A stretch of 64,000 bases of DNA from Octopus sinensis (Eukaryota), in contig NC_043006.1 of NCBI RefSeq assembly GCF_006345805.1, positions 6,200,001 to 6,264,000 on the forward strand, read 5' to 3'. This document shows positions 2,642-54,312 of this stretch, piece after piece. The first letter of the stretch is position 1. Each line of letters opens with the position of its first letter. Below the pieces are notes generated by a model. That model saw nothing but the letters and a program-made list of their open reading frames with translations. It was not told the origin of the DNA and ran no database searches. Made by a program: the position numbers and the translations under genes.

Positions 2642-2647
2642 TTTATT
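2642..2647 (-). terminator. Candidate polyadenylation signal AATAAA overlapping the stop of exon B
   Basis: Minus strand reads TAAATAAAA at 2649-2641. Confidence 0.45.
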
Positions 2648-2798
2648 TAATACTGCTTGCATGATTGGATTATATATGCTATTAAGCCTTCAAGTTCAGA
2701 TTTTTTTTTAATACCAGCAAATACCAGCCTCGTACCTGGGTAATACTGCTTTGGATTGTACAAAAACTTCCTGATTTCATCTTGATTGAGAATGCGAC
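2647..2798 (-). CDS. Cytochrome c-like terminal exon B (GRILNQDEIRKFLYNPKQYYPGTRLVFAGIKKKSELEGLIAYIIQSCKQY*)
   Basis: Acceptor aattattttag|GT in phase 1; 21/49 identical, ungapped, to cytochrome c exon 2; M80L, W59L, Y67F; intact frame. Confidence 0.9.
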
Positions 2799-2832
2799 CT
2801 AAAATAATTAAAATGATATGAATATATACATG

Positions 2833-2868
<36 letters not shown>

Positions 2869-2872
2869 CATG

Positions 2873-2921
<49 letters not shown>

Positions 2922-3013
2922 ATATATATATGTACATCAAATAAAATTAAAAACAGAACACAAAGGATATCGCGGTACACGTGTTTCAAGCTTTATAAAT
3001 AATCCGTTCTTAC

Positions 3014-3134
3014 ATCAGTGTATAATTGATATAAAATATGGTTTAAAGCTCTCTTCAGCCACACACATTGTTATTCCAAAGAGTACATGTAGTATTACCA
3101 TATATTGTCTTTCACCTCTGCCACTATCTGGCAT
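3014..3134 (-). pseudogene. Candidate N-half exon for copy B with in-frame TGA (MPDSGRGERQYMVILHVLFGITMCVAEESFKPYFISIIH*, then T|gt)
   Basis: Phase-1 donor T|gtaaga 215 nt above exon B. Ungapped 9/35 identity to gene A exon 3, with the same distance from GER to the splice. Confidence 0.45.
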
Positions 3135-3204
3135 ATACAGGTGCTTACACTTATCAAGTATTCACCCTAAATTTACAGTACCTATATATATATATATACT
3201 CTCT

Positions 3205-3610
3205 CTCTTTTACACACTTTTACTTGTTTCAGTCATTTGACTGCAGCCATGCTGGAACACCACCTTTAGTCGAGCGAATCGACCCCGGGACTCATTCTTT
3301 GTAAGCCCAGTACTTATTCTATCGGTCTCTTTTGCCGAACCGCTAGGTGACGGGGACGTAAACACACCAGCATCGGTTGTCAAGCAATGCTAGAGGGACA
3401 AACACACACACACAAACATATATATATATATATATATACATATATACAACCGGCTTCTTTCAGTTTCTGTCTACCAAATCCACTCACAAGGTATTGGTCG
3501 GCCTGGGGCTATAGCAGAAGACACTTGCCCAAGATGCCACGCAGTGGGACTGAACCCGGAACCATGTGGTTGGTAAACAAGCTACTTACCACACAGCCAC
3601 TCCTGCGTCT
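3205..3610 (-). mobile_element. SINE family A (tRNA-like head GGCGCAGGAGTGGCTGTGTGG, internal TA/CA microsatellite)
   Basis: About 400-bp repeat present many times in the window. Confidence 0.9.
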
Positions 3611-4379
3611 ATATATATACATACATACATACATGCATGCATGCACACACACATATTAGCAGAGATACCTGGTGTTACTCAGGATTAAAATAGTATAGTT
3701 ATTTATAGTTTTACTTGTTTCGGTCATGTGACTGCAGCCATGCTGGAGCACCACCTTTAGTCAAAGAAATCAACCTCAGGATTTATTCTTCGTAAGTACT
3801 TACTCTATTGGTGTGTTTTGCCAAACGGCTAAGTTACGGGGACACAAACACAGCAACATTGGTTGTCAAGCGATAGCAGGGGAAGAAACTGTGGTGCATG
3901 CGGGAAATTTGAAATAAGGACACCTCCCTCCTCTTCGTCGACCGAGACATCTCCAGTGGTAATGCACCCTTCCATGTGGCCTGACCCGAATGCTAGAAAT
4001 AGCAGCTGCTTTTCCCCTACCTTGATAAAGCGCTCACACGTCTAACTCTGTCGGCTTACCCCAATCGAAAGGCCAATGCTCCCCTGCCTGTGAGTGCGTC
4101 ACTCCTGCCCCTTCCTCTTCCGGTCAGCTCCCCAGCTGCTGACGTCATCCCACAGAAATAGAGACACACACACATACACATATATACACACACAGACACA
4201 TATATATATATAAAACTGAGAATTTGTGCCTGTCTATATGTATGTAGGTGTGCATCACTAAAACTGGAGAACTACCCAACAGATTTAATTCAAATTTCAC
4301 ACATGCCTTACTTAGGGTCCATGCAGTGTCAGTGTAGCAAAGACCAAAGTTCTAGTAAGTAGGAAGGCGAACTCATCAC

Positions 4380-4860: not shown

Positions 4861-4922
4861 TGTATATATATGTGTATATATATATGTATGTATGTCTATG
4901 TATGAATGTATATGTATGTATG

Positions 4923-4969
<47 letters not shown>

Positions 4970-6179: not shown

Positions 6180-8772
6180 ACAGGTACTAGAAAAAGTGAA
6201 ACTTTCCGAACAAAGCATCACTAAGGAAGAAAAGTTCGCTATCAAAAGACTACAGAGTGAAAATTCCATCATAATACTTCCAGCGGACAAGGGAAATGCT
6301 ACAGTGGTGATGGACAAGTCTGACTACTCTGAAAAATTGGCAAGTATCATAAGTGATGGTAGCTACAGCAAAGAATAGAAAGACCCAACTCTCAAAAACA
6401 GAGAGGAAGTCACAGATCTTGATCAAGAACAAGGATCACTTTACACCAATGAAGTACTGACAACTGATTCAACACTTCAGTAAACTACCACACATGTACA
6501 GTCTCCCTAAGATTCACAAGGATGGTATTCCATTAAGACTTATAGTGAGCTGTAGAGGTTCAGCACGTCATCAACTGAGCCGCTTCCTTGTGGATATAAT
6601 CAGTCCATTAGCAGGAAAGTCAACATCGTACGTGAAGAATTCCACCCACTTCACAGAATTGATCAGAATTGAATCGAACCAGATGGTGAGTCTAGATGTG
6701 ATAAGTCTGTTCACCAAAGTCCCAACTGGTGAAGCACTATCGGTGATACAAGGAAAACTAGTGACAGACACCCATCTAAAAGAACACACTAGTATACCAA
6801 TAAGAAACTTGATAGAAATGTTGACCTTCTCTGTAGAAACTACCTACTTCAGTATGGACACTGATATATATCGACAAGAAGAGGGTTTAGCTAGAGGTTC
6901 GGCATTATCATCAATAATAGCCAATGTATTAAACGGAATACTTTGAGAATTTGGCTTTAGGATCAACACCACTAAAACCAACCCTATGCTGGGATATGTT
7001 GATAACACCTTTATACTCTGGCCCCACTAGGAAGATGTCCAAGTGCTGTTAGATCATGTATACTCAATAAAGCCATTCATAGAGTTCACAACGGAAAAGG
7101 CAAAAGACAATCAGCTGGCATTCCTGGACATATTAATAACATACACCAAGTATGGATTCAGGACATCAGTATACCGCAAGCCGACCTTCACTGGACGATA
7201 CTTTAACTTCAATTCCCACCATCCATACATTGTAAAGAGAAGGATTGCTCAGTGCCTGAAACATTGAGCAAAGAATATAAGTAGTGATAGTTGTATACAC
7301 CATGAAGAAATGATCAGGCTCATTAACAACTTATTGAGCAACAACTACCCCAAAAACATACTCTCCAATCCAATTATGAAGAAAAGAGAGGATGAAACCA
7401 ATAAACTGTCCACAGTCTGTCTAACCTTTGTGAAAGGCCTCTCCAAAATGATGCAAAAGCTATGTTGCCCATATGACATCAGGACAGTATTCAAGAGTAA
7501 TACAACACTTCACAAATATCTCCTTCGAGTAAAACCACCAATAGAAGAGAATATGACCAAAGACTGCATGTACTCCATCCCATGCAACTGTGGTAGGTTA
7601 TACAAAGGCGAAACATGCCGACCCCTCAAAATAAGGGTAGAGGAATATCGCAAAGCTGTGACACGAGGAGATATCAATATAGCTGATCATGTATGAAAAA
7701 ATGGAGACCAGCTCCCCCTGTGGGATGAAGTTTAAATAATAGAGAACACCACTGGAAAATACGAAAATACATATGCTAGGAGACAACAACCTCTAAGCAG
7801 ACTGAGTGCAGATATGAGTAGCATATGGGAACTGGTATTCAGGAAGGATAGGAAAATATTAGATTTATAAACCCTAAAATTCACTCCATTATTGCCCATG
7901 GGCATATGGCATGGTGGTTAAAAGTGTGGGCTACTAACCCCAAGGTTCCGAGTTCAATTCCAGGCAGTAAAAATGTCCGTTTTCCATGCTAGCATGGTTC
8001 TGGGAAGTCAGGAGACTGCACCAGGCTCTAGTCTGATCTGGCAGTGGTTTCTACAGCTGGGTGCCCTCCCTAATGCCAACCACTCCGTGAGTGTAATGGG
8101 AGCTTTTTATGTGCCAGCGGCACAGGGGCCAGAGAAGGCTGGCAACGGTCACGATCGGTTGGTGCATTTTACATGCCACCAGCACGGGTGTCACAACTGC
8201 AATTTCCATTTGATTTTCATTTTGAAGTTGATGTTGATGTACTTGACTCAATAGGTCTCCTCAAGCACAGCAGGTTGCCCAACGATCCAAGGTACTTTGA
8301 ATGAGCTGGGACTGGATATGCAAAACTGGTGTAGGATACAGTCATGAACTCACTTTATTTGCTGGGTCTTCGCAGTCACAGCATATCTCCTGAGGTCTTG
8401 GTCTTTCGTCATTGCCTCTGTGAGGCCCAATGTTTAAAGGTTATGCTTCATTACCTCATCCTATGTCTTCCTGGGTCTACCTCTACCCCAGATTCCTTCA
8501 ACTGTTTGGGAATGGCACTTCTTCACACAGCTCTCCTCATCCATCCGTAGTACATGACCATACCAGTGCAAACGTCTCTCTTGCATGACACATCCTGTGA
8601 CATCACAATTTTCTCTCACATGCTGTCTTGCAATCCAATCGAGAAATACCATAGGAATGAGAACCCAGGTTTGAAATTTCTGCAAGACACATGATGAAGG
8701 CTGGAGGGTATATCAGCCGAAACGTATTAACAAACAAGATGAGGACAAATATCCGTCAAATGTAAATAATGT
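6180..8772 (+). mobile_element. Penelope-like retroelement (RT + GIY-YIG), degraded, interrupted by SINE/RTE inserts at about 7970-8640
   Basis: YSLPKIHKDGIPLRLIVS, VSLDVISLFTKVP, QEEGLARGS, YSIPCNCGRLYKGET; many stops and frameshifts; tRNA-like segment at about 7895-7965 and a hammerhead-like 3' segment. Confidence 0.9.
8686..8730 (+). ncRNA. Degenerate hammerhead motif (Penelope terminal repeat)
   Basis: CATGATGA-AGGCTG-loop-CAGCC-GAAAC-GTA; one core mismatch. Confidence 0.4.
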
Positions 8773-8959: not shown

Positions 8960-9990
8960 AGAGCCAATGTGAAAGTTTGTGTTAAACTTGGGAAGTGTGC
9001 TACGGAGACATTGAGCATGCTTCAGCAAGCTTATGGCAATGAGGCAATGGGTTGTACACAATGTTTAGAGTGGCATGGGTACTTCAAAAGACACTTTGCC
9101 TCCCCAAAATCCATCCCCTCCTCACCGTGGTGGGGATGCTGGCAACGGGTAGTGTCAGAGCTATGCCGTCGGGAACTTCAGTTCCTGGTAGGGCCACCCA
9201 AGGTGGATTGGTCTGACACCGAGTGGTATTAGGGCCACAACCCGGCAAATCCTCGGTGAAATCCTCGGAGTGTCTGTTTCGGCAACCGGCGGCTCCTCGG
9301 TTGTTCTGTCACTGCATCTGTGGACAATCTGCAGCAAACAGGATGTCTCTACATGCGGGATTGTTGGGGACCACTTGTGAAATCCACATATTCCCACAAA
9401 ACTTCTTCCAAAGAAGAAGCCGATTCAACCCGCCCAGGGTGAATGTCGCCACAAGTACAAGAAATTCAAAAGTAGAAGAACATCCTGGGAAGATGATGAG
9501 CGATCTGGAAGACATGCAACAAGCGTCACCCCAGAAATGTGGTATTGTGCATCAAGAATTTGTCCAAGGCCAGACCATCGATCCTGAGTTCTACTGCAAT
9601 GGTTCCAAGCATCTGAGGGAGAACATTTGGCAAAAGCGACTGGATCTGTGGGACATGAATAATTGGATTCTTCATGTCAACAATGTACCCTGTCACTGAG
9701 TTCTCCTCACTCATGAGTTTCTCGCCCAAAACAACAGGGTATCACTTCCACACTCACCCTATTCACCAGATTTAGCACCTGTGGACTTCCGTCTCTTCTC
9801 GAAAATGATAATGCAGCTCAAAGGTCGCTGTTGTCAAGATCCAAGTGAATTGCAGAAGGTCCTCAACCCACTTGTGGAAAACGTCTTCCAGACCACAATC
9901 CAAAAGTGGCAAGAATGCTGGGACTGGTGTACTGTGGCACAAGATGTCTATTTAAAAGGAAATGATGTTAAAACTTACATAAATAGCTCA
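8960..9990 (+). mobile_element. Mariner transposase remnant with an unrelated insert at about 9090-9470
   Basis: KLGKCATETLSMLQQAYGNEAM (HTH), HQEFVQGQTI, WILHVNNVPCH, HSPYSPDLAP; disrupted frames. Confidence 0.9.
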
Positions 9991-10408
9991 TTTGTTTGAT
10001 TAAACATAACTAGTTTTGATAGGAACGTTTTGATACCTTTTTCTTTACTGCCCACAAGGGGCTAAACACAGAGAGGACAAACAAGGACAGACAAACGGAT
10101 TAAGTCGATTACATCGACCCCAGTGCATGATTGGTCCTTAATTTATCGACCCCGAAAGGATGAAAGGCAAAGTCGACCTCGGCGGAATTTGAACTCAGAA
10201 GGTAACGGCAGACGAAATACTGCTCAGCATTTCGCCTGGCGTGCTAGCATTTCTGCCAGCTCGCCGCCTTATGTTTTGATACCACCTTATAATATACCAT
10301 GGAAAAATTATTTTTTCTTCCGATCCTCAGAATTACTCAAATATGAAATCATATGATACTTACCATCTTTAAAGTCCTCAAAAGTTAATTTAAACCAAAC
10401 ATTTTGTA

Positions 10409-10557
10409 CTAATTCTCATTACATGCATGGGTCATATAAGCTATTAGCATATTAACATTATCTTTCTCCATACTAGCAACTTTTATCTTTGTAGAGGGTA
10501 AAACAGACTTTGGGCGATTCAAAAACTTCCTAAGTTCATCCTTTTTGTAAACATGAC
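10409..10557 (-). CDS. Gene A exon 4 (GHVYKKDELRKFLNRPKSVLPSTKIKVASMEKDNVNMLIAYMTHACNEN*); divergent cytochrome c C-half
   Basis: Acceptor ttcatttttag|GT in phase 1. Coding length 149 nt, the same as cytochrome c exon 2. Keeps PK, P-TK, LIAY and Cys102; about 18/50 identical to the 2647-2798 exon; Met80 position is Ile. Confidence 0.8.
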
Positions 10558-10605
10558 CTAAAAATGAATTTATATATAAATGTAAAGATTATATGTGCTC
10601 ATATA

Positions 10606-12251
10606 TTGGGTCATCCCATAAATAATGTGGGTTTTTTATATTTATTTTATTTTTCAAAATTAAGATAAACAAAGTTCTTTTTATAATCTAAAATATACTC
10701 TCCTTCCTTTTCTACAATGCTCTTCCATCTATCTGGTAGACTTGCAAGGCCCCTCTTTCAAAATTCACTTGTCTGTGATGAAAAATACTCTTCCAGTACT
10801 GCTCTGACCTCATCTACGGAATTCATACTTTTTCTGTCCAAATAATTTTGAAGACTGAAGAATAAATGTTAATCAGATGGAGCAATGTCCAGTGAATATG
10901 GTGGGTGGGGCAAAATAAGTTCATTCATGAGACTTGACAGCAAAGAAGAGCACACATTTGCTCTCTGCCCATGATTAGACTTGGAACCCATTGAGCCAAT
11001 TTGATGATTTTTCCAATAGCATGCAGGTATCAATGAAAGGTTGAATGGCTAAATCCAAGTTTCTTTGCTAGTTCCTCAATAGATACGACAGGATTTTGTT
11101 CCACCATGGGTTGCAGGACATCCTCACCGAGCTCTACAGATCTTCCAGGACATGGCTCGTCTCCTAAGCTGTAGTTTCTGGCTCAGAATTTCTGAAAACA
11201 CTCTCTCTTTCTCTTTTACTCTTTTACTTGTTTCAGTCATTTGACTGCGGCCATGCTGGAGCACCGCCTTTAGTCAAGCAAATCGACCCCGGGACTTATT
11301 CTTTGTAAGCCCAGTACGTATTCTATCAGTCTCTTTTGCCGAATCACTAAGTGACGGGGACGTAAACACACCAGCATCGGTTGTCAAGCAATGCTAGGGG
11401 GACAAACACACACACACACACACACATATATATACATATATATACATATATACGACAGGCTTTTTTCAGTTTCCATCTACCAAATCCACTCACAAGGCAT
11501 TGGTCGGCCTGGGGCTATAGCAGAAGACACTTGCCCAAGGTGCCACGCAGTGGGACTGAACCCGGAACCATGTGGTTGGTAAGCAAGCTACTTACCACAC
11601 AGCCACTCCTGCGCCACTGTTGACACTGGTTTACACTTATTGTCCCATCCTTGTATATCATCATCATCATCATCATCATCATCCAGTGTTTTAAATCTGG
11701 GTTTGCCCCCGTTAACAGGGGTGACCGGATCTACCTCAATGCCGTAGCAACCGAGGTAAGCAGGTGCAGCCCACCCCCAATCTTTGGGCTGGCTGGTACC
11801 CATTCTCCTTTGCTGTCATGAGGCTTTTTTTTTAGCTGGATTTTCTACAGGGATCATGCCCTTGCTTACCCCTAACCTCAGTTTATTAGACATGAGTGGT
11901 CTTGAGACCAAGGCCTCTGCCACAATTTTTTTAAAATGTAGTGGAAAACTAGCTCAGCAAGGCAGGGACCCTACTCCCTGAGACCCTTTTCAGAGCCCCC
12001 CCCCCTAATATACTGCATTAATATTCTTCACACTTTTCATAAAGCAAAATAAGCTGATTATGCTCCTTTGTCATTTCCATTAAAGCTTTGAAAAAATAAC
12101 CATAACTGCACTCTTCAAAACTTGCACTAAGAATAAGTACAAGGCAAGTAACTACCTGCTTTTATAGGAAGTTGACACAGTTTATCCTGTCCCCTTCAAC
12201 TCTTAGTTCATGCAATTGAAAAAAAAATGCATTATTTATGGGATGACCCAA
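10606..12251 (-). mobile_element. Mariner-like DNA transposon with TIRs and TA target duplication, carrying nested SINEs
   Basis: TTGGGTCATCCCATAAATAATG at 10606 and its reverse complement ending at 12251, TA on both sides; C-terminal transposase remnant LPDRWKSIVEKEGEY on the minus strand. Confidence 0.85.
11205..11615 (-). mobile_element. SINE family A
   Basis: Full-length copy nested in a mariner element. Confidence 0.9.
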
Positions 12252-15016: not shown

Positions 15017-15936
15017 CAGGGTGTGATGGGTAAATTGTTACTATTTTTAATTTTATGCATGGGCATTGTCTGTTTTTGATTTTATCAACTACACAGTATT
15101 GTAGGGTTGGTTGGGGACTGTCTGTGAGAAAAACAGCATCATGACACAATTCACTCTACTAGATATTTGGAAACAACATGCTGTACTGTTTGGCGTTCAC
15201 ACCAGAAGCAACGATACATACAGATGGTGCACACACAGTACAAGCATTGGTTTGCCATGTCCTCAAAACATGAACTGAGAGTGATAAAAACCAAACAACC
15301 AGTCAACATCATGGTGTTTGGAGCGATCACTCATGATGGCGATGTTATGCCTCCATTCATCTTCCTACATGGGCTCACACTTAACACGGAGGCCTTCATC
15401 AAGTGCCTGGAGGAGGTAGTGTTACCCTGGGTCAAGAGGGTGGCTGCTGGAAGACCCTATGTCTGGCAACAGGATTCTGCACCATGCCACACAAGCAGGA
15501 GAACCCAGTGATGGTTGTCAGACAACTTCTGCGACCACATCACCCTTAAGATCTGGCCACTTAACTCCCCTGAATGGAACCCTCTTGATTATAAGGTGTG
15601 GAGCGCAGCTGAGCTAGAGACCAACAAAACTCCTTATAATACTGAAGATGAACTGAAAGCAAGGATTATGGTGGCATTCACCATCCAGAAGAGTTGCAGG
15701 AGATTCTGAAGTCATCTGAAGGCTATGGTTGACGCCAATGGCAATTTTATTGAATAAATTTACATTTTAGTATTTCAAAATACTTTTATCTAATTTTGGT
15801 AAATATATCTGTTAATATGAGATAATTTGATTGATTTGATCTAGTTTAAGCTCATGAGCTGTGGTCATGCTGGGGCAGTCAGTGTTATTTTCATTTTTAT
15901 GTAATTTAGACGACTGTATATTCACCGCACCCTGTA
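15017..15936 (+). mobile_element. Tc1/mariner DD37D (maT-type) transposon remnant inserted in (TA)n
   Basis: Ends CAGGGTG...CACCCTG flanked by TA; MVFGAI...WQQDSAPCH...WPLNSPEWNPLDY with 37 residues between the last two Asp; internal stop. Confidence 0.85.
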
Positions 15937-17803: not shown

Positions 17804-17934
17804 CCATGTGTGCCTCATCTATGATATTCATCAAGCCAACATCTTCATCCTTCTCACTACATATAATCAGTAGATATCGGCCTAAACGTTTATATATTCT
17901 CTCACCAGCTCTAAGATTGATTCTCAAATTTCTC
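17804..17934 (-). CDS. Gene A exon 3, 131 nt (RNLRINLRAGERIYKRLGRYLLIICSEKDEDVGLMNIIDEAHM + G); degenerate cytochrome c N-half
   Basis: Acceptor tctacattttag|, donor G|gtaatt, only one frame open. AGERIYK resembles the N-helix motif GKxIF; ends in a split Gly codon like the cytochrome c exon. Confidence 0.75.
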
Positions 17935-18966: not shown

Positions 18967-19021
18967 GGTCGTATTGCTCTCTTAAAAATGGTGTTTCCAT
19001 CTGCAGTTCCCAAACAGGTAT
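18967..19021 (-). CDS. Gene A exon 2, 55 nt ((D)TCLGTADGNTIFKRAIR(P))
   Basis: Acceptor ttgctacttcag|, donor CC|gtaaga. The phase 1-in/phase 2-out frame is open and matches both neighbouring exons. Confidence 0.7.
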
Positions 19022-21289: not shown

Positions 21290-23045
21290 ACAGCAACTAG
21301 TCACACACCACAAGGTTTAATGGAAACCACTGAAGCAACCCAGCATGCTTGCAGCATTACCATAGGTGATGGCGAGGCTTAGGCATTGAGAAAGCCAAGC
21401 ACCTTCATGGGCATCACCTGGCACCTCGCTGAGGCAAGCTACCAATATTGACAAGAACTCTGCAGTTAGTGGCCCAGTCCCTCCAAACGTCTCAAATGCC
21501 ACAGGTTGGAAGAGATAGTTCGCTGTTAGATCCTGATACTTCAGAATTTTCTTCCATTTGGCTATGGAAGCAGTGACCCTCCCATTAACTGCAGCATCCA
21601 GGATGTGGGAGGGAGAAAAGGAGTCACAGACTGTGGCATCCCAAATGAGGCATCTACCTCTAACCCAGGGACAGAGGATAAGACCATCTGGCCTCTTTCC
21701 ATCACTTCTGGATAACCCTGACAGCTCCAGAACTGAGGGGATATTAATCCGAGCCAGGATCGGCTTAAGGATTAGGGTTTAGCTTGGTGTGACAAGTGAA
21801 GTGACCAGCATTTAGGTGGCAAGACAGACCTTAAAGACCTGTTGGGTTGAGGGGCCTACCACAGCGGCATCCGAGTCCCCTACAGACGTCAGCTCCCACT
21901 CTGAGTGTGATGGAGATGCAGAGATCATCTGGACAGACTGAGTAGACCTCCAATGTTGGCCATTGGCAGGTCGTCAATCCAGTCCCCTGAGAATTTTGCC
22001 CTATTACAAGGAGAGAGCTGAAAGTGGCACTTGAATGCAGACTGTCCCATACTCTCTGTTTCTGTCTATCCTCCACTGTAACCAGAACTGACAAACCCAG
22101 CTCTCTCCACTGTAATAGAGCTTAATCCATCTCTCTGTTGGAATTAGTCCATGCTGGAGAGGTGAGGATGTTGCCTTCTAAAGAGGAGCAAGTGTGGGTG
22201 GAGGAAAGACAACAGGGAAGATATAAAGATGAGCACTTGCGCAGACCTAGACCCCCAAACCATTTGGGCAAAGCAGCTTGGTTGTGGGAGTCTGGAGAGA
22301 GTTTGACATTGACCAAGCATTCAAGTTTCCTGAAGATTAGGTCATCAAAGTATTGAAGGGACAACAGGAATCTGTAAGAGGGTCCAACTCTCAGAAAATA
22401 CAATAGCTTAGGAATTGACAAGTAATTCCTAAGTACCAAAAGATCTTGGTGGGGCTCACTTACTTCAAGGCTTTTAAAAGTTGTTCAAGGTTTTTCATTT
22501 TGGATTTAAAGATGGACTTGAAAGCTAGGTCAGTAATTAGAGCTCTAAGGGAGCACCATGCTGATGAAGAAGGAATTGCTATTGAGGGGAAAGAGTCAAC
22601 AAATAGTTTAGTAGTCTGCTCATGCAAAGCTGGGCGGTTGAAGCACCAGAGCTTGCATTTGGAGCTGTTAACACTAAGACCCCTATGACCAAGTTCCTCA
22701 ATCATTGTCCTCACAGTTGCAAGTACCTTGTCAGGAGGGCCTCCCAAAGAAGCATCATCGAGGTGCCAGACATTTAGGTCAAGGTCGGCTCCCATCGAGG
22801 TAACATCATTAATACCCAATGCGAATTGGGCAGGACCAAGTGGATCACCCTGTTAGACTGCAGAAGCAGATGGAGTCTAGCAGGGCTCCTGATAGGCTTG
22901 CCAAGCAAAGTGATAAAGTGGTGGGGAATTTTCCCTTACTGTGTGGAGGATGATGTCTCGACTGATGGAGTTAAAAGCAACTTAAGGTCAAGCTTGAGGA
23001 TGACCTTTGGGGACTCAGAGGGCAAGTTGGTGAAAGCCCTGGTGG
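21290..23045 (-). mobile_element. CRE-clade non-LTR retrotransposon fragment (RT + restriction-like endonuclease)
   Basis: GDPLGPAQFALGI, WHLDDASLGG, GGLGLR, CRCG zinc knuckle, DGKRPDG...PW...WDATV, FQPVAFETFGG; lies in the first coding intron of gene A. Confidence 0.8.
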
Positions 23046-23529: not shown

Positions 23530-24285
23530 AAACAAACTCCACCTGTCTAACACCCGTGGACATGTTTACAAAGTCAGAAAACAGCACAGCTCCTTCCATG
23601 ACTTTCGGAAACATTTTTTCACGCTAAGAGTTGCTGAAGCATGGAACAAACTGCCGGCATCAGTTGTTAGTTGTTGGAGCACTGCATCCTTCAAAACTTC
23701 CATGCTTCCTGAGATTTGCCCACACTACACCTGATTTTCTCCCTTCCATACACACGCAAGCATCTATCTGACTCATACACTGTTCACTTCCCAGACATTT
23801 GTACATTACTGTATATGCTTTATACGCACTTTTGACAAGTTGTGGTGCACCTGAGCACTGTATACAATAATTTCATTATTATTATTATTATTATTATTAT
23901 TACTAACAATAACTCTGAGTACCTTTTCAAACTCCACCTGTCTAACACTCGTGGAGATGTTTACAAAGTCAGAAAACAGCACAGCTCCTATTAATTTCGA
24001 AAAAAGTTTTTTCACGCTAAGAGTTGCTGAAATATGGAACAAACTGCCGGCATCAGTTGTTAGTTGTCAGAGCACTGCATCCTTCGAAACTTCCATGCTT
24101 CCTGAGATTCGCCAACACTACACCTGATCTTTCTCCCTTCCATACACACGCAAGCATGTATCTGACTCATACACTGTTCACTTCCCAGACATTTGTACAT
24201 TACTGCATATGTTTTATACGCACTTTTGACAAGTTGTGGTGCACCTGAGCACTGTATACAATAATTTCATTATTATTATTATTAA
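23530..24285 (+). mobile_element. Two tandem CR1/L2-type LINE 3' ends with (ATT)n tails
   Basis: TRGHVYKVRKQHS...FFTLRVAEAWNKLP repeated at about 23530-23900 and 23925-24285. Confidence 0.85.
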
Positions 24286-24308: not shown

Positions 24309-24357
24309 CAAAATTTATAACCATGCAGAGAAATACTGCCAAAACAATGAGCTTCAT
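24309..24357 (-). CDS. Gene A exon 1: signal-peptide exon (MKLIVLAVFLCMVINF + G) of a cytochrome c-derived secreted protein
   Basis: Acceptor ttctgttttag|GACATC-ATG (A at -3); basic n-region plus hydrophobic h-region; strong phase-1 donor G|gtaagt. Confidence 0.75.
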
Positions 24358-24454: not shown

Positions 24455-24845
24455 TTTTTTTTACTCTTTTACTCTTTTATTTGTTTCAGTCATTTGACTG
24501 TGGCCATGCTGGAGCACCGCTTTTAGTTGAGCAAATCGACCCCAGGACTTATTCTTTGTAAGCCTAGAACTTATTCTATCAGTCTCTTTTGCCGAACCAC
24601 TAAGTTACGGGGACGTAAACACACGAGCATAGGTTGTCGAGCGATGTTGGGGGGATAAACACAGACACACACACATACATACGACGGGCTTCTTTTAGTT
24701 TCCCTCTACCAAATCCATTCACAAGGCTTTGGTCGGCCCAAGGCTATAGTAGAAGACACTTGCCCAAGGTTCCATGCAGTGGGACTGAACCCGGAACCAT
24801 ATGGTTGGTAAGCAAGCTACTTACCACACAGCCACTCCTACACCT
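24455..24845 (-). mobile_element. SINE family A
   Basis: Full-length copy. Confidence 0.9.
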
Positions 24846-27434: not shown

Positions 27435-27526
27435 TGCCAAGAATTCAATACAAATGAATCTAAAGGCTTGGTCATTGGTGACACAAGTATATTAAACTTG
27501 AACCTTCAAATCAAAATCGATGAACA

Positions 27527-35129: not shown

Positions 35130-35385
35130 GATCATCATCATCATCATCATCCTCATCTTCATCATCATCATCTTCATCGTCCTCGTCATCATCATCATCA
35201 TCATCATCATCATCGCCATCATCGTCATCGTCCTCGTCATCATCATCATCATCATCTTCATCGTCAATGTCCTCGTCATCATTATCATCATCATCATCGC
35301 CATCATCATCTTCATCTTCACCGTCCTCGTCATCATCATCATCATCATCATCTTCATCGTCATCGTCCTCGTCATCGTCATCATT

Positions 35386-35424
<39 letters not shown>

Positions 35425-35455
35425 GTCGTCCTCGTCATCATCATCATCATCATCG
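35130..35455. repeat. Degenerate (CAT/CGT/CTT)n triplet tract
   Basis: Expanded SINE-B-type tail; produces spurious poly-His/Met/Ile/Ser ORFs. Confidence 0.9.
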
Positions 35456-39040: not shown

Positions 39041-41438
39041 ATGTTTTTCGTTGCCAATAGAATATTTTTAGTTGTCTAAAGAATGTTTTTAGTTGCCTAT
39101 AGAATGTTTTTCGTTGCCAATAGAATATTTTTAGTTGTGTAAAGAATATTTTTAGTTGCCTATAGAATGTTTTTCGTTGGCAAATCGAATATTTTTAGTT
39201 GCCTATAGAATGTTTTTCGTTGCCAATAGAATATTTTTAGTTGTCTAAAGAATGTTTTTAGTTGCCTATAGAATGTTTTTCGTTGCCAATAGAATATTTT
39301 TAGTTGTCTAAAGAATGTTTTTAGTTGCCTATAGAATGTTTTTCGTTGCCAATAGAATATTTTTAGTTGTCTAAAGAATGTTTTTAGTTGCCTATAGAAT
39401 GTTTTTCGTTGCCAATAGAATATTTTTAGTTGTCTAAAGAATGTTTTTAGTTGCCTATAGAATGTTTTTCGTTGCCAATAGAATATTTTTAGTTGTCTAA
39501 AGAATGTTTTTAGTTGCCTATAGAATGTTTTTCGTTGCCAATAGAATATTTTTAGTTGTCTAAAGAATGTTTTTAGTTGCCAATAGAATGTTTTTCGTTG
39601 CCAATAGAATATTTTTAGTTGTCTAAAGAATATTTTTAGTTGCCTATAGAATGTTTTTCGTTGCCAATAGAATATTTTTAGTTGTCTAAAGAATGTTTTT
39701 AGTTGACTATAGAATGTTTTTCGTTGCCTATAGAATATTTTTAGTTGTCTAAAGAATATTTTTAGTTGCCTATAAAATGTTTTTCGTTGCCAATAGAATA
39801 TTTTCAGTTGCCTAAAGAATATTTTTAGTTGCCAATAGAATATTTTTAGTTGTCTAAAGAATGTTTTTAGTTGCCTATAAAATGTTTTTCGTTGCCAATA
39901 GAATATTTTTAGTTGTCTAAAGAATATTTTTAGTTGCCTATAAAATGTTTTTCGTTGCCAATAGAATATTTTTAGTTGTCTAAAGAATATTTTTAGTTGC
40001 CTATAAAATGTTTTTCGTTGCCAATAGAATATTTTTAGTTGTCTAAAGAATGTTTTTAGTTGCCTATAGAATGTTTTTCGTTGCCAATAAAATATTTTTA
40101 GTTGTCTAAAGAATATTTTTAATTGCCTATAGAATGTTTTTCGTTGCCAATAGAATATTTTTAGTTGTCTAAAGAATATTTTTAGTTGTCTAAAGAATAT
40201 TTTTAGTTGCCTATAGAATGTTTTTAGTTGTCTAAAGAATGTTTTTAGTTGCCTATAGAATGTTTTTCGTTGGCAATAGAATATTTTTAGTTGTCTAAAG
40301 AATGTTTTTAGTTGCCTATAGAAATGTTTTTCGTTGACAATAGAATATTTTTAATTGTCTAAAGAATGTTTTTAGTTGCCTATAGAATGTTTTTCGTTGC
40401 CAATAGAATATTTTTAGTTGTCTAAAGTATGTTTTTAGTTGCCTATAGAATGTTTTTCGTTGCCAATAGAATATTTTTAGTTGTCTAAAGAATATTTTTA
40501 GTTGCCTATAAAATGTTTTTCGTTGCCAATAGAATATTTTTAGTTGTCTAAAGAATATTTTTAGTTGCCTATAGAATGTTTTTCGTTGCCAATAGAACAT
40601 TTTTAGTTGTCTAAAGAATGTTTTTAGTTGCCTATAGAAATGTTTTTCGTTGCCAATAGAATATTTTTAGTTGTCTAAAGAATGTTTTTAGTTGCCTATA
40701 GAATGTTTTTCGTTGCCAATAGAATATTTTTAGTTGTCTAAAGAATGTTTTTAGTTGCCTATAGAATGTTTTTCGTTGCCAATAGAATATTTTTAGTTGT
40801 CTATTTTTAGTTGTCTAAAGAATGTTTTTAGTTTCCTATAGAATGTTTTTCGTTGCCAATAGAATATTGTTAGTTGTCTAAAGAATATTTTTAGTTGCCT
40901 ATAGAATGTTTTTCGTTACCAATAGAATATTTTTAGTTGTCTAAAGAATGTTTTAGTTGCCTATAGAATGTTTTTCGTTGCCAATAGAATATTTTTAGTT
41001 GTCTAAAGAATATTTTTAGTTGCCTATAGAATGTTTTTCGTTACCAATAGAATATTTTTAGTTGTCTAAAGAATGTTTTAGTTGCCTATAGAATGTTTTT
41101 CGTTGCCAATAGAATATTTTTAGTTGTCTAAAGAATGTTTTTAGTTGCCTATAGAATGTTTTTCGTTGCCAATAGAATATTTTTAGTTGTCTAAAGAATA
41201 TTTTTAGTTGCCTATAGAATGTTTTTCGTTGCCAATAGAATATTTTTAGTTGTCTAAAGAATGTTTTTAGTTGCCTATAGAATGTTTTTCGTTGCCAATA
41301 GAATATTTTTAGTTGTCTAAAGAATATTTTTAGTTGCCTATAGAATGTTTTTCGTTGCCAATAGAATATTTTTAGTTGTCTAAAGAATATTTTTAGTTGC
41401 CTATAGAATGTTTTTCGTTGCCAATAGAATATTTTTAG
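39041..41438 (-). repeat. 63-bp higher-order satellite array, inverted relative to 32013-33922
   Basis: About 2.4 kb of near-identical units; reverse complement of the 63-bp unit. Confidence 0.95.
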
Positions 41439-41925: not shown

Positions 41926-42358
41926 AGTTGAAACAATTGTAGTGGTTTTGAATAAAGACTCACATGAATCCCATTTTCTGTATTTGATCTATATATCATC
42001 ACCATTTAGCATCCCTTATCCATGCTGGTATGGGTTGGACAGTTTGACAAGGGCTGGCAATGACAGGCAGCAACGAACTCCAGTTTGATTTGGCATGGTT
42101 TCTATGTCTGGATGTCCTTCCAAATGCCAAACTACACCAGTATCTGCCATCACTATGAATTCACTTGGCTTGATGGATCTTTCTTCTCAAGTACAGCATA
42201 TTGCGAAAGGTCTCAGTCATTTGTCATTGCTTCCATGAGGCCCAGTGCTCGAAAAATGCTTGTTATGCATCACTTACATGATTGCTAGTTATGTAACATT
42301 AACACTGGCCACCGTGAGGCCCAGTACTCGAAAAGTGCTTTTTACATGCTAACATATA

Positions 42359-42529
42359 GGCGCAGGAGTGTCTGTGTGGTAAGTAGCTTGCTAACCAACC
42401 ACATGGTTCCGGGTTCAGTCCCACTGCTTGGCATCTTGGGCAAGTGTCTTTTGCTATAGCCCCGGGCCGACCAATGCCTTGTGAGTGGATTTGGTAGACG
42501 GAAACTGAAAGAAGCCTGTCGTATATATG

Positions 42530-42570
<41 letters not shown>

Positions 42571-42790
42571 CTGTGTTTGTCCCCCTAACATTGCTTGACA
42601 ACCGATGCTGGTGTGTTTACGTCCCCGTCACTTAGCGGTTCGGCAAAAGAGACCAATAGAATAAGTACTGGGCTTACAAAGAATAAGTCCCGGGGTCGAT
42701 TTGCTCGACTAAAGGCGGTGCTCCAGCATGGCCGCAGTCAAATGACTGAAACAAGTAAAAGAGTAAAAAAGAGAAAGAGTAAAGAGTAAA
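42359..42790 (+). mobile_element. SINE family A
   Basis: Full-length copy. Confidence 0.9.
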
Positions 42791-43629: not shown

Positions 43630-44022
43630 TTACTCTTTTACTTGTTTCAATCATTTGACTGCGGCCATGCTGGAGCACCGCCTTTAGTCGAGCAAGTCGA
43701 CCCCGGGTCTTATTCTTTGTAAGTCCAGTACTTATTCTATCGGTCTCTTTTGCCGAACCGCTAAGTGACGGGGACGTAAACACACCAGCATCGGTTGTCA
43801 AGCAATGCTAGGGGGACAAACACAGACACACACACACTCATATATATATATATACATATATACGACGGGCTTCTTTCAGTTTCCGTCTACCAAATCCACT
43901 CACAAGGCTTTGGTCGGCCCGAGGCTATAGTAGAAGACACTTGGCCAAGGTGCTACGCAGTGGGACTGAACCTGGAACCATGTGGTTGGTTAGCAAGCTA
44001 CTTACCACACAGCCACTCCTGT
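43630..44022 (-). mobile_element. SINE family A
   Basis: Full-length copy. Confidence 0.9.
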
Positions 44023-44352
44023 ACATTTTAATTCAAGTTTTGAGATAGAATTCAAAGGACTGAAGTGAAATCTGGTAGAATGACTTGGCTAGTCGTTATT
44101 CAAGGGGCATAACTCTGTTCCAGTTCACCTGAGAAATAAATTTCATAAAACATGCGAGCCTCTATATAATTGTTCTGCCTGTTAGAAGAAACAGCCAAAT
44201 CTCCCTCAAATGATATCCAACAGTCTTAAAAGGGATATGCTGGATAACAGGGCCTGGGCTCCCTACACTCAAGACGTTGGGATTAAAAGCATTTCAACCT
44301 TTAATCAACAATTCTGTTGATTCAAGACTGATCAACAACTAAACAGCAATAC

Positions 44353-45000
44353 AGGTGCAGGAGTGGCTGTGTGGTAAGTAGCTTGCTTACCAACCACATG
44401 GTTCCGGGTTCAGTCCCACTGCGTGGCACCTTGGGCAAGTGTCTTCTACTATAGCCTCGGGCCGACCAAAGCCTTGTGAGTGGATTTGGTAGACAGAAAC
44501 TGAAAGAAGCCTGTGCCGGTGGCACATAAAAAGCACCATCCGTTCGTGGCCGTTTGCCAGCTCTGTCTGGCACCAGTGCGGGTGGCACGTAAAAAGCACC
44601 CACAACACTCACGGAGTGGTTGGCGTTAGGAAGGGCATCCAGCCGTAGAAACACTGCCAGATTTGACTGGGCCTGATGAAGCCTTCTGGCTTCACAGACC
44701 CCAGTAGAACCGTCCAACCCATGCTAGCATGGAAAACGGACGCTAAATGATGATGATGATGATGATGATGATGTATGTGTGTGTTTGTGTCTGTGTTTGT
44801 TCTTCTAGCATTGCTTGACAACCGATGCTGGTGTGTTTATGTCCCCGTTACTTAGCGGTTCGGCAAAAAAGAGACCGATACAATAAGTACTGAGCTTACA
44901 AAAGAATAAGTCCCGGGGTCGAGTTGCTCGATTAAAGGCGATGCTCCAGCATGGCCGCAGTCAAATGAATGAAACAAGTAAAAGAGTAAAAGAGAGAAAA
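44353..45000 (+). mobile_element. SINE family A interrupted by SINE family B (44513-44772)
   Basis: A head to 44512, B body with (GAT)n tail, then A tail. Confidence 0.85.
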
Positions 45001-45095
45001 GAGTACAGGTTTCAGTGGTACTTGAAGATTGAGTGGTTAGCAATAGTTTAATATCATATCTTCAAACGCCATAAGTACATTTGTGTATTCTAAGA

Positions 45096-51281: not shown

Positions 51282-51453
51282 TTAATCTTGTAAATCGAAT
51301 TTTCAAAGTTGGTTTCTGTTGATTCTACACACAGGGATCAACTAGGAGTGACATATTCTGTTTATTATTAATCTTGTAAATCGAATTTTCAAAGTTGGTT
51401 TCTGTTGATTCTACACACAGGGATCAACTAGGAGTGACATATTCTGTTTATTA
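51282..51453 (+). repeat. 86-bp tandem duplication downstream of cytochrome c
   Basis: Units start at 51282 and 51368. Confidence 0.9.
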
Positions 51454-51645
51454 TTACCGTTATTCACAATACTGATATATGCTGTTACTCTGAGATCTTT
51501 TTTTTTTTTTCCAATGGTTTTAAAAAGAAAAGGTTTTAATTATAGTCTGTGATATTTTCCTGCAATGTTCTTAGAATGTAATTTTTTTTACAATATTTTA
51601 TGAGACATACAAACCGAACAAAATCGAAATTATATTTTTCTCTAT

Positions 51646-51651
51646 TTTATT
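51646..51651 (-). terminator. Candidate polyadenylation signal AATAAA of cytochrome c
   Basis: AATAAA about 40 nt downstream of the stop codon on the minus strand. Confidence 0.5.
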
Positions 51652-51691
51652 ATCTAATCCTATTATTTTGAGATCTCTAAGTCAATTGTCA

Positions 51692-51840
51692 TTATGATTT
51701 ACAGCATTCTTCCAGATAGGCTATAACATCGGCTCGTTCTTTTTCTTTCTTAATACCTGCAAATATCATCTTTGTGCCAGGAATGTATTCCTTGGGATTC
51801 TTTAGATAAATAAAAAGAGTCTCCCTTGTCCAAGTAATAC
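51692..51840 (-). CDS. CYCS: Cytochrome c, coding exon 2 ([49 protein letters not shown])
   Basis: Acceptor tattttccag|GT in phase 1; W59, Y67, PGTKM80, FAG motifs; TAA stop. 181+149 = 330 nt = 109 aa; intron 2291 nt. Confidence 0.97.
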
Positions 51841-52055
51841 CTGGAAAATACAGATGAAAAAAAAAAAAAAAAAAAGTCAATTTTGTTACCATTTTCTAAG
51901 ATTCTTAAACAGAATATTTCTAATAGAAAAAAAAAAAAAGAATATTATGAAATGTTAAAAAGAGTAAAAGTGAATAAATTAGCAGAGATGACTAGCAACT
52001 TGCTGTGTGGAGCAGGTGTGCTTGGAAATGCAGGCCAGGTAAAAATGGACATTAA

Positions 52056-52360
52056 CTCCTTACCCGGCAGAAACGAATATATGCGTTTTGACCGAAATCG
52101 TTTTTTTCTATCTCTGGCGAGTTAACTCGTTAAAAGATAGACTCGCCAAAAATCGACAGCAAACGAGTTCCTTCGTCTAAAAACGGGTTAACTCGTTTCT
52201 GCCCAAAGCGGTAATTTAAAATCAATATTATTGAATTAAAATTCATAATAAATAAGGTTTGAAATATACCTCGAAATCACCATTCAAAACATAGTAAAAT
52301 AAAACAATTAAAAAATATGTCTGAAAAAATACATTTTCAAAATAATTGTTGGGTAAGGGG
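52056..52360. mobile_element. piggyBac-like MITE in the cytochrome c intron
   Basis: TTAA-CTCCTTACCC...GGGTAAGGGG-TTAA. Confidence 0.65.
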
Positions 52361-52384
52361 TTAAAATTGTATATCAAATTCGAT

Positions 52385-52912
52385 GACTGGCGTCTGTGCT
52401 AGCGGGGTACAAAGAGCACCATACGAGTGTGATCATTGACAGAGCGGCCAACTGGCTTCAGTGCCAGTGGCACTTAAAAGGCATCATTCGAGCATGATCG
52501 TTGCCAGCGTCACCTTACTGGCACTCGAGCCCCGTGCTAGTAGGGTATCAAGAGCACCATCCGAGCGTGATCGTTGCTAGAGCGGCTATTTGGCCTCTGT
52601 GCCGGTGGCACGTAAAAAACACCATTCGAGCGTGATCGTTACCAGCATCGCCTCACTGGCACCTGTGCCAGTGGCATGTGTAAAAGATTCGAGCGAGGTC
52701 ATTGCCAGTGCCGCCTGACTGGCCCCGTGCCGGTGGCATGTAAAAGCACCCACTACACTCTCGGAGTGGTTGGCGTTAGGAAGGGCATCCAGCTGTAGAA
52801 ACTCTGCCAGATCAAGATTGGAGCCTGGTGCAGCCATCTGGTTTGCCAGTCCTCAGTCAAAATCGTCCAACCCATGCTAGCATGGAAAGCGGATGTTAAA
52901 CGATGATGATGA
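52385..52912 (+). mobile_element. SINE family B variant in the cytochrome c intron
   Basis: Subrepeats plus core plus (GAT)n tail. Confidence 0.85.
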
Positions 52913-54131
52913 TTAACATTTGCTCCTTTAACATTCATTTTTCCATGCCAGCAGAAGTCGAATGAGTACGCAGAGTATTTACAGTTAGATTCTCTTCCTG
53001 TCATTAACCTTCACATGGTTCCTTATACCATGTCTCTGAAAGCAGAGAACCAGAGGATGATTTCTTTCTTTCCTTTTTATTTTGTTTGATAGAAAATGTC
53101 AACAAACATCAAAGTTCCATTTAGTTCAAGACTTTTCATACAAAGTGAGTAATAAGTCAACTGGTTTCAGTGGAAAAGCAACAGTTGGTCTGTCACTAAT
53201 TCATTTCTAGCAATTACGTCCCCTTCCTTTGAAAGTTTATAACAATTACTAAATTTCCCTTCAAATTTCATCCCAACCTTTTTTTTTTTTTGCATACAGC
53301 AAGCTTAACTGTGTGTCGCTTAAAGAATATATAGTATTTGCAAGTGGAGAGAGAGCTTTCATCACTTGTGGTTGTCTCACACTGAGGATGGGAAACGTCC
53401 AGAAACCTAGGTCTGTATCATGTAAGGCTAAAAATGGGAGTGATGACCTCCCTTGCAAATGCTATATGGACACAAACTGTGAGTTAATAGCCAGAGATTA
53501 CATCACCCCCCCCCCAGTGCACAACTGGTACTTTATTTATCGACCCCGAAAGGTTGAAAGGCAAAGTCAACCTCAGCGGAATTTGAACTCACAACGTCGC
53601 GACAGACGAAATACAGCTAAGCATTTTGCCCAACGTGCTAACGTTTCTGCAAGCTCACCCACCTATCCCGTACCATTCATGCTGTTTTACCACACATTTT
53701 TACAACAGCAACAATGAAATGTAATTTATGAAAAAAAACCCATTCTTTACTGAACAGTTCATTTAACAATCTGAAGAAAATATTAAAAGAACTTTCAGTT
53801 ATGCTAACCCATAATCTAAATGTAGATTCTTATGTTATTTCTCATTGTTCGTCCTATTTTCTAATTTTATTCCTCCTGCTTCCCGACATTCTGTGACATT
53901 TTGCGTACTAAGGAAGAATATAATAGTTCTCATTTCATTTGTTGAAATATGGTTATACCATTTCATAGGACTGGAGCAGATCGGTGAAATTTTAACACGA
54001 CTTACAAATAGAGGCCAAGGAAAATTCATTTTGCTAAAACATACAATAAACAAATTAGGAAGACTATAACATATTCACAGAACTGTCGGAAGCATTTAGT
54101 AAAGAGCCAAGAATTCTCCAGTAACACTTAC

Positions 54132-54312
54132 CTTTGTTTTTATTGGCCTCAGTGTAAGCAAAGCCAGGTGCCTGGCCAGTTTTACGTCCTATCAGACAAT
54201 ACAAATTTGGTCCAGTTTTGTGTTTTCCACCAGGATCTACTGTATGGCACTGAGCACACTTCTTTTGGAAAATGCTTTTACCCTTAGCTGCATCTCCAGC
54301 AGGAATTGGCAT
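54132..54312 (-). CDS. CYCS: Cytochrome c, coding exon 1 ([60 protein letters not shown] + G)
   Basis: CXXCH heme motif and [13 protein letters not shown] motifs. Acceptor tttctag|G one base before the ATG; phase-1 donor G|gtaagt at 54131; 181 nt. Confidence 0.97.

Follow-up and report, generated by a model that had tools for sequence, protein, structure and literature searches.

The window analyzed here comprises 64,000 nucleotides of Octopus sinensis DNA (assembly GCF_006345805.1, contig NC_043006.1, positions 6,200,001 to 6,264,000 of the forward strand). Its minus strand carries a canonical cytochrome c gene and, 27 kb downstream on the same strand, LOC115216643, a gene with two alternative exons that resemble the C-terminal half of cytochrome c (the C-half). 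The first coding exon of cytochrome c (54131..54312) extends from Met1 to the first base of the Gly61 codon, contains CAQCH, and ends with ...NKNK followed by AAAG|gtaagt, a phase-1 donor; the second (51692..51840) opens at ttttccag|GTATTACT...EECCKS* and encodes the C-half, including Met80 and the stop codon. The spliced 109-residue product is an exact match to XP_029642027.1, 'cytochrome c [Octopus sinensis]', and matches Pfam PF00034 with E = 9.5e-15 (56.1 bits, against a cut-off of 21.3). Octopus residue numbers equal horse numbers plus five, Met80 thus being octopus residue 85. The Octopus protein has unusual additional cysteines, Cys39 (54196-54198) and the Cys106-Cys107 pair (51701-51706); Cys39 lies in the context NLYC in O. 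sinensis and NLSC in O. bimaculoides, other animals have Gly37 at that place, and the Argonauta protein lacks Cys39.

LOC115216643 has three upstream coding exons, also on the minus strand. E1 (24309..24357) consists of ATG and 16 codons that specify the signal-peptide-like segment MKLIVLAVFLCMVINF, preceded by the acceptor ctgttttag|GACATC and closed by a phase-1 donor, G|gtaagt. E2 (18967..19021) encodes DTCLGTADGNTIFKRAIRP and ends in phase 2, and E3 (17804..17934) encodes RNLRINLRAGERIYKRLGRYLLIICSEKDEDVGLMNIIDEAHMG, carries a conserved cysteine (Cys60 of the product) and terminates in phase 1 at G|gtaatt. Two C-half exons come next, 7.6 kb apart and each with its own stop codon: A4 (10409..10557; tttttag|GTCATGTT...HACNEN*), with Ile at position 80, which completes the 127-residue isoform X2, and B (2647..2798; attttag|GTCGCATT...QSCKQY*), with Leu at position 80, which completes the 128-residue isoform X1. 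All of the exons have canonical splice sites and compatible phases. A splice acceptor lies directly before the start codon of both genes, 1 nt before the ATG in cytochrome c (54313-54322) and 6 nt before it in LOC115216643 (24358-24372), implying that each has a 5'-untranslated exon farther upstream.

This exon structure was recognized through a HMMER search with a profile of A4 and B against 1.84 billion representative proteins. Its two top matches were P0121 (127 residues, E = 7e-27) and P0125 (131 residues, E = 4e-15), with bacterial multi-domain cytochromes and conventional cytochromes c ranking below. The sequence of P0121 is MKLIVLAVFLCMVINFDTCLGTADGNTIFKRAIRPRNLRINLRAGERIYKRLGRYLLIICSEKDEDVGLMNIIDEAHMG and then the exact A4 peptide, and is encoded by the window exons E1, E2, E3 and A4; exact-sequence look-up identified it as XP_036362166.1, isoform X2. 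The same look-up showed that our hand-built splice of E1-E3 to B is XP_029641992.1 / XP_036362165.1, 'cytochrome c isoform X1 [Octopus sinensis]', which falls in one cluster with CAI9728440.1 ('cytochrome c-like') of O. vulgaris. The second match, P0125, has the accession GAB1601167.1, 'cytochrome c-like [Argonauta hians]'. The gene is annotated in three species, under names that are misleading or empty; isoforms X1 and X2 are annotation models. Word-index protein searches with A4 and with B had returned no matches, and these were false negatives, the exact protein being found later by HMMER.

A4 and B are thus alternative last coding exons of one gene. An earlier note on this stretch had treated them as belonging to two genes, a claim that did not survive: the interval between B and A4 (2.8-10.4 kb) contains nothing resembling E1, E2 or E3 and no N-half exon of cytochrome c detectable by tblastn, blastn or regular expression, its content being repeats and transposon fragments only. 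Matches between the B and A regions in blastn were confined to repeats and the exon itself, and no relic N-half exon with a CXXCH motif was found upstream of A4 or B in the window. Because B has no upstream exons of its own nearby and E1-E3 joined to B is a RefSeq isoform, the second duplication was that of an exon.

The relationship of A4 and B to cytochrome c is evident from both gene structure and sequence. The second exon of cytochrome c, A4 and B each open with GT, which completes a glycine codon (G|GT, Gly56) split by a phase-1 acceptor, and the codon is split at the same phase in Argonauta (G|GT in the exons termed 4a below, G|GA in 4b). Cys102 is kept in all three Octopus exons; Met80 occurs only in cytochrome c, and the motif DE(L/I)RKFL only in A4 and B. 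In a MAFFT alignment, by our own count, B is identical to the cytochrome c C-half at 20 of 49 positions (21 with the split glycine) and A4 at 13 of 49; A4 and B agree at 17 of 48 (35% amino acid and 61% nucleotide identity). Within the window, tblastn with the cytochrome c C-half finds B at E = 4e-12 and A4 at E = 4e-4. Profile comparison of the family C-half with that of cytochrome c by hhalign gives a probability of 99.2% (E = 1.6e-19), and a profile search of the Protein Data Bank (PDB) matches horse cytochrome c at E = 1.2e-10, residues 56-102 against family positions 76-122, placing the shared cysteine at horse residue 102. These comparisons indicate that the C-halves of A4 and B are homologous to that of cytochrome c, with a similarity far above chance. 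The earlier note had reported the three same-strand exons with their shared phase-1 junction and Cys102, the residues at position 80 and the derived motif, and all of these were found as described. Its graded identities, 21/49 for B and 13/49 for A4, were likewise reproduced, but they do not form a time series, since the rates of the two exons are unequal (omega, the ratio of non-synonymous to synonymous change, is ~1 or more for A4 and ~0.45 for B).

No comparable signal was detected for the remainder of the protein. When the N-part of the family (residues 22-79) was compared with the N-half of cytochrome c, hhalign returned E = 0.4 with two aligned residues, and semi-global alignments scored no better than shuffled sequences (permutation p = 0.12-0.88). 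Full-length hhalign (E = 5e-15) and MAFFT do extend collinearly into the N-part, placing GNTIFKR opposite GKSIFQK, a six-residue gap exactly over KCAQCH, and Gly45, Gly68 and Gly79 on Gly34, Gly45 and Gly56; these weak matches are driven by the strong C-half and are not independent evidence. An alternative N-part alignment of our own, pairing GERIYKRL with GKSIFQKK, was without statistical support and was set aside. Detectable homology therefore begins exactly at the intron/exon boundary, a pattern that fits equally well a copy of the exon only, grafted on to unrelated exons, or a duplication of the whole gene whose N-half diverged after heme was lost. The acceptor directly before the ATG in both genes is a weak hint in favor of whole-gene duplication; in the family this acceptor is conserved in Argonauta, where a 31-nt block from acceptor to ATG is 90% identical in all three gene copies. 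Of the proposal in the earlier note that A and B arose from a duplicate of the local cytochrome c, the ancestry of the C-half and the common origin of the two exons stand, but conversion of the whole gene does not gain support from the N-part.

The residues that bind heme are gone from the products of this gene. The motif CXXCH (regular expression C..CH) is present in the adjacent cytochrome c and absent from X1, X2 and P0125, and the family has no equivalent of His18. Position 80 is Leu in B, Argonauta copy 3 and 4b, Ile in A4, and Val in Argonauta copies 1 and 2; Trp59 is replaced by Tyr or Leu and Tyr67 by Phe. A Pfam scan of P0271, P0121 and P0125 reported no family at E ≤ 0.1, PF00034 included. 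Judged by its residues, the LOC115216643 product cannot be a c-type cytochrome, in keeping with the loss of heme function proposed earlier, and the names 'cytochrome c isoform X1' and 'cytochrome c-like' are misleading.

The new N-terminus is of a different kind from that of mitochondrial cytochrome c, which carries no cleavable signal and enters the intermembrane space as the apoprotein. It begins with Met-Lys and a 14-residue hydrophobic core, followed by DTCLG|T, a cleavage site after Gly21 with small residues at -3 and -1. Maximum Kyte-Doolittle hydropathy over 12 residues is 3.5 in Octopus and 2.8 in Argonauta, compared to -0.01 in cytochrome c; the Argonauta N-terminus is equivalent in pattern, and the signal-like segment is on an exon of its own. 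The product is accordingly predicted to enter the secretory pathway, in which case it would not meet holocytochrome c synthase, an enzyme of the mitochondrial intermembrane space. The predicted mature Octopus proteins have 106-107 residues, a mass of 12.3-12.5 kDa, an isoelectric point (pI) of ~9.7, and two conserved cysteines, one in LL(I/V)C (Cys60) and one equivalent to Cys102. Isoform B and Argonauta 4a keep from cytochrome c the 60s helix, NPKxYxPGT(K/R), FAGIKK(K/E) and the C-terminal (L/F)IAY helix. Most likely, then, the gene specifies a secreted, heme-free, basic protein of ~12 kDa with a swappable C-terminal module. Its retained lysine-rich surface, fast evolution and lineage-specific tandem amplification lead us to infer a role in extracellular binding. 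We found no paper on LOC115216643, its accessions, or a secreted cytochrome c-like protein in octopus. An egg-derived sperm attractant of O. vulgaris, reported by De Lisa et al. in 2013 to be of ~11 kDa, is close in size to the mature protein; a link between the two would be speculative, and we do not count it as evidence.

The family and its linkage to cytochrome c are conserved in other octopods. In both Argonauta hians and O. vulgaris the order is cytochrome c, then the family, then Rcd1. On Argonauta contig BAAFZT010000018.1, cytochrome c lies at L002 10001-10769 and the family starts 7.4 kb downstream on the same strand, where the four-exon gene, a structure annotated there independently, occurs as three tandem copies spaced ~9.3-10.1 kb apart (copy 1, L002 18159-19572; copy 2, L001 728-2139; copy 3, which is P0125, L001 10001-13393); Rcd1 comes next, on the opposite strand. 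The C-half exon of the four-exon gene is termed 4a. Copy 2 is followed by an extra C-half exon, 4b (L001 2527-2750), which has a phase-1 acceptor and starts ~390 nt past the end of 4a; the segment is absent from copies 1 and 3. An annotated Argonauta product of 188 residues ends at the 4b stop codon and seems to merge copies 1 and 2. The hand-built isoforms of copy 1, copy 2 and E1-E3 joined to 4b are absent from the protein collection. The C-terminal extension of 4b, ...CKNEGIRNGPRLYNPKILHKLGWSKPKQ, occurs in no other member.

An independent O. vulgaris assembly is collinear with the window, and ~97% identical to it, from position 32542 to 1, with an unchanged order of E1, E2, E3, A4 and B, Rcd1 downstream on the opposite strand, and a gene model spanning E1 to the B stop codon. 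Exon B is 100% identical between the two species and A4 is intact with a single Ser-to-Gly change (1 of 149 bases differs, versus 18 of 1000 in the flanks). The agreement rules out mis-assembly. Ancestor and offspring do sit side by side, as the earlier note had suggested. The family predates the Octopus-Argonauta split and so is older than this locus by itself would suggest.

Rates of substitution point to a protein that has been maintained while changing quickly. Octopus X1 and Argonauta P0125 share 46% amino acid identity, compared to 84% for the cytochromes c of the same two genera, with proportions of non-synonymous (pN) and synonymous (pS) differences of 0.32 and 0.70 and an omega of ~0.2. 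Omega is ~0.14 between B and Argonauta 4b, and 0.25 between Argonauta 4a and 4b. These values indicate that the family is under long-term purifying selection; together with recent changes that are mostly non-synonymous (given below), they form the pattern of a real, fast-evolving family of predicted secreted proteins.

To place the C-half exons relative to each other, trees were built by neighbor joining. In the protein tree the family formed a clade with 100% bootstrap support and joined the cephalopod cytochromes c at 71%, as the earlier note had anticipated; the pairing of A4 with B received 0% because A4 lies on a long branch. With nucleotide distances, A4 and B grouped at 80% (synonymous), 83% (third-position) and 61% (all sites), and Argonauta 4a and 4b at 59%, 87% and 82%, respectively, groupings that species-specific GC content at third codon positions could favor by clustering sequences by species. 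The pS between A4 and B (0.45) is lower than the value for the cytochromes c of Octopus and Argonauta, which are orthologs (0.67). Moreover, a block in the 3' flank of A4 (10284..10336, minus strand) is ~78% identical over 53-54 nt to one in the 3' flank of B (2509..2561, minus strand), with a local alignment score of 26 against 10.4 ± 1.5 for shuffled sequences (z = 10.5; 0 of 300 shuffles reached the score); the 3' flank of cytochrome c has no similarity to this block. The event that set A4 and B apart, whether their duplication or a later gene conversion, is thus probably younger than the Octopus-Argonauta split, and the Argonauta exon duplication is probably independent of it.

The sequences downstream of the two exons suggest how they may be spliced. 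A strong donor-like site, GATG|GTAAGT, lies 45 nt past the A4 stop codon and would make 10364 the last exon base; the homologous place in B reads GACAAGT. The 1.5 kb following A4 contain neither AATAAA nor ATTAAA; in B, an AATAAA overlaps the stop codon and an ATTAAA stands at +13. A4 may therefore be a stop-containing cassette exon spliced on to B, not a true terminal exon used to the exclusion of B, and the position of the donor is compatible with a cassette exon evading nonsense-mediated decay (NMD). A4 and B resemble the alternative exons produced by tandem exon duplication in, for example, ion-channel and tropomyosin genes: they are homologous, adjacent and in the same strand and phase, they follow a common upstream exon in the two alternative products (as RefSeq models), and synonymous and third-position distances place them together. 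They differ from that class in being last coding exons with their own stop codons, 7.6 kb apart with transposons between them, in that one may act as a stop-containing cassette spliced on to the other, and in that one has an omega of ~1 or more.

Together, the results favor the reading, to which we give a probability of about three in four, that LOC115216643 is a single heme-less paralogous gene, beside the canonical cytochrome c, in which a cytochrome c C-half exon exists in two alternative copies behind a signal-like N-part. Such a gene would have originated in a cephalopod ancestor, before Octopus and Argonauta separated, by local duplication of the cytochrome c gene or of its second coding exon alone. 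The C-half exon would then have been duplicated again inside the gene in the Octopus lineage, and the whole gene would have been amplified to three tandem copies in Argonauta. In the RefSeq models, a signal-like segment and a basic 58-residue N-part (E1-E3) are joined to either A4 (X2) or B (X1), with the retained elements of cytochrome c (60s helix, NPKxYxPGT(K/R) loop, lysine-rich 86-88 patch and LIAY helix) probably forming an extracellular binding surface that the choice of A4 or B would swap. A bolder extension, which we regard as doubtful, is that the whole protein descends from cytochrome c with KCAQCH excised and a signal exon added, a Cys60-Cys125 disulfide replacing heme as the staple of the core; the resulting secreted heme-free fold would present a Lys72/73/86-88 patch to an anionic partner (lipid, receptor or gamete surface), its surface diversified by the alternative exons and by Argonauta tandem copies under positive selection.

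Set against known systems, the family retains several marks of its mitochondrial parent (class I cytochrome c, CYCS, PF00034): its C-terminal 49 residues are homologous, the phase-1 Gly56 intron is the same, the genes adjoin and both have an acceptor just before the ATG, and the protein is basic and keeps the cephalopod-type Cys102. It differs in lacking CXXCH, His18 and Met80, in the replacement of W59 and Y67 and the failure to match PF00034, in the hydrophobic N-terminus from an extra exon and the unalignable N-part, and in its fast evolution. Mouse testis Cyct and the tandem cyt-c-d and cyt-c-p of Drosophila are likewise local or tandem cytochrome c duplicates kept alongside a housekeeping copy in another role, but they remain heme-binding, mitochondrial and complete in fold, whereas the octopus family has lost all heme ligands and appears to be off the mitochondrial route. 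Processed cytochrome c pseudogenes, which are numerous in mammals, are also extra copies of cytochrome c sequence and resemble A4 and B in being dead with respect to heme. A4 and B differ from them in keeping the intron position and splice sites, in being joined to other exons, and in belonging to a family that has been under long-term purifying selection and syntenic for ~100 million years or more of octopod evolution; an origin of A4 and B as retrocopies is ruled out by the retained intron position and splice sites and by the long-term omega of ~0.2.

Several observations weigh against parts of the favored reading. Recent substitutions leave room for relaxed constraint: Argonauta copies 1 and 2 differ by 5 non-synonymous and 0 synonymous changes, copy 3 differs from the others by ~20-23 non-synonymous and 3.3 synonymous changes (omega 1.5-1.8), and O. 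sinensis and O. vulgaris differ over all exons by 4 non-synonymous changes and 1 synonymous change, numbers too low to tell positive selection and relaxed constraint apart. Secretion is predicted from a hydropathy and cleavage-site heuristic. AlphaFold confidence is low, with a mean predicted local distance difference test score (pLDDT) of 49 when four family sequences were supplied and 47 when cytochromes c were added, and the fold, the proposed disulfide and any binding pocket are putative. Only residues 81-128 reach a pLDDT of 57-74, modeled as three helices; Foldseek aligns this segment with cytochrome c over 47 columns (root-mean-square deviation 2.3 Å, E = 3e-3), a circular result in that the alignment given to the model included cytochromes c. 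The binding surface is likewise putative. Finally, the use of A4 is represented by one RefSeq (Gnomon) isoform; the O. vulgaris annotation has no A4 isoform, and a hand-built one is absent from the protein collection.

This last point belongs to the alternative that we take most seriously, although we still think it rather unlikely: that A4 is a degenerating duplicate exon, included rarely or by the gene predictor only, and that the functional gene is E1-E3 with B. For the A4 branch, rough three-point estimates give an omega of ~1.5, compared to ~0.45 for the B branch (~0.8 for the pair), A4 has lost residues typical of the family (PGT has become PST, and FAGIKK has become VASMEK), and it has no nearby polyadenylation signal. 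Nor does its intact open reading frame (ORF) argue strongly for selection, the chance of its persisting under neutral drift being 0.12-0.30 with indels ignored; we rejected it as proof on that account. Against decay, A4 retains its acceptor, phase and stop position, the sole indel between A4 and B is in frame, and conservation between them is highest at second codon positions (0.75, compared to 0.52 at first and 0.56 at third positions). The existence of isoform X2, the scarcity of differences from O. vulgaris relative to the flanks, a donor placed as in an NMD-escaping cassette, and the retention in Argonauta of a second C-half exon, 4b, at an omega of 0.25 also speak for a used exon. A different view of the product, which we consider improbable, would make it a peptide precursor in which prohormone convertases cut at IFKR|A and at a second KR to release short basic peptides, leaving the cytochrome c-like part as a carrier. 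The dibasic KR at residues 30-31 is invariant in all members, and a second KR is found at 50-51 in Octopus; in Argonauta it lies at 43-44 and is part of GKR, a classical amidation signal. The position of this second KR is not conserved, however, Octopus has GER in place of GKR, and it is the C-half and not the candidate peptides that is best conserved (pN of 0.25 versus 0.34).

The other alternatives carry still less weight. That the product is still a mitochondrial or heme protein, with an N-terminus acting as membrane anchor or sorting signal and heme held non-covalently, for instance by a histidine at the exon junction, seems very unlikely. A cluster of histidines does occur at the E3/E4 junction (EAHMG|H in X2, HHFG|H and DHYLG|H in Argonauta), and B keeps Phe82, Leu68 and the C-terminal helix of the former heme pocket; the junction histidine is not conserved in X1 (G|RILN), all of CXXCH, His18 and Met80 are missing, and a 14-residue hydrophobic stretch right after Met-Lys is typical of a cleaved endoplasmic reticulum signal, with no amphipathic basic presequence. 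The idea that A and B are two separate neofunctionalized genes, born of two whole-gene duplications of cytochrome c, could draw on the stop codon of each exon, their distance and the whole-gene tandem copies of Argonauta; it is already largely refuted, and highly improbable, given the lack of signal, E2- or E3-like, or N-half exons between them and the joining of E1-E3 to B in a RefSeq isoform, in an annotated O. vulgaris protein and in the O. vulgaris gene model. Almost no credence is left for A4 and B as alternative 3' exons of cytochrome c itself, giving heme-bearing isoforms without Met80. Strand, the phase-1 Gly56 junction and reading frame would all permit such splicing, but the chimeras in which cytochrome c exon 1 continues into A4 or into B are absent among 15 billion proteins, in which E1-E3 joined to A4 and to B are both present, and a full gene start, E1-E3, stands between cytochrome c and the two exons.

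Cytochrome c is among the most conserved of proteins, and covalently bound heme is generally considered a requirement for its fold. Here a lineage-specific gene has kept half of its sequence under purifying selection throughout incirrate octopod history despite losing all heme ligands and gaining a predicted secretion signal, a clean natural experiment, should it be confirmed, on what the C-half can do without heme. It would also show how local duplication, the grafting of exons and the tandem duplication of an exon can turn a housekeeping gene into a new secreted family that still lies next to its parent. LOC115216643 would be an annotated but unstudied case in which a core respiratory protein has been reused, and its database entries call for correction, the product named 'cytochrome c isoform X1' or 'cytochrome c-like' not being a cytochrome.

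Outside the window, WDR24 lies upstream of cytochrome c in both Octopus and Argonauta, as indicated by consecutive accession numbers and fused gene models. In the gastropod Nucella lapillus, the 157-residue gene model P0001 joins a complete cytochrome c to part of another N-half, which has a CAQCH of its own; this points to cytochrome c duplicates in tandem or to a model that merges genes.

The window is rich in repeats. A SINE-like repeat (resembling a short interspersed nuclear element) of ~400 bp is present in at least 9 copies on both strands, 80-93% identical to one another, at 3197-3614, 11205-11613, 24464-24839, 26989-27435, 42354-42781, 43632-44021, 44349-44997, 56.0-57.3 kb and 58.7-59.0 kb. 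Its pseudo-ORF ...YQIHSQGIGRPGAIAEDTCPRCHAVGLNPEPCGW gives rise to the majority of spurious C..CH hits in the window, the remainder falling in other non-coding stretches. Degenerate fragments tentatively assigned to mariner/Tc1 transposases by their motifs (HPPYSLDIAPSD, ...QQDSAPCHT and ...NNVPCH) lie at 10650-11182 (minus), 9223-9699 (plus) and 15167-15511 (plus); a Pfam scan of the three pieces reported nothing at E ≤ 0.1, and one of them lies only ~90 nt upstream of the A4 acceptor. Reverse-transcriptase-like retrotransposon fragments at 21320-22852 (minus) and 6494-7696 (plus) lie in introns of LOC115216643, with a weak RVT_1 match (E = 0.044) at 22463-22852. In intron 1 of this gene, a 394-bp unit is repeated in tandem at 23533-24284 (1.9 copies, 94% matches), beginning 25 nt downstream of E1. 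Between cytochrome c and LOC115216643, two mutually inverted arrays of a 21-bp satellite (32013-33921 and 39041-41438; ~92 and 115 copies, 82% matches) flank roughly 5 kb, and each has a long open frame on one strand (RKTFYRQLKIFF...). Lastly, a long imperfect ATC/GAT trinucleotide repeat of 108 copies at 35131-35454 gives poly-Met, poly-Asp or poly-His/Ile ORFs depending on the frame.

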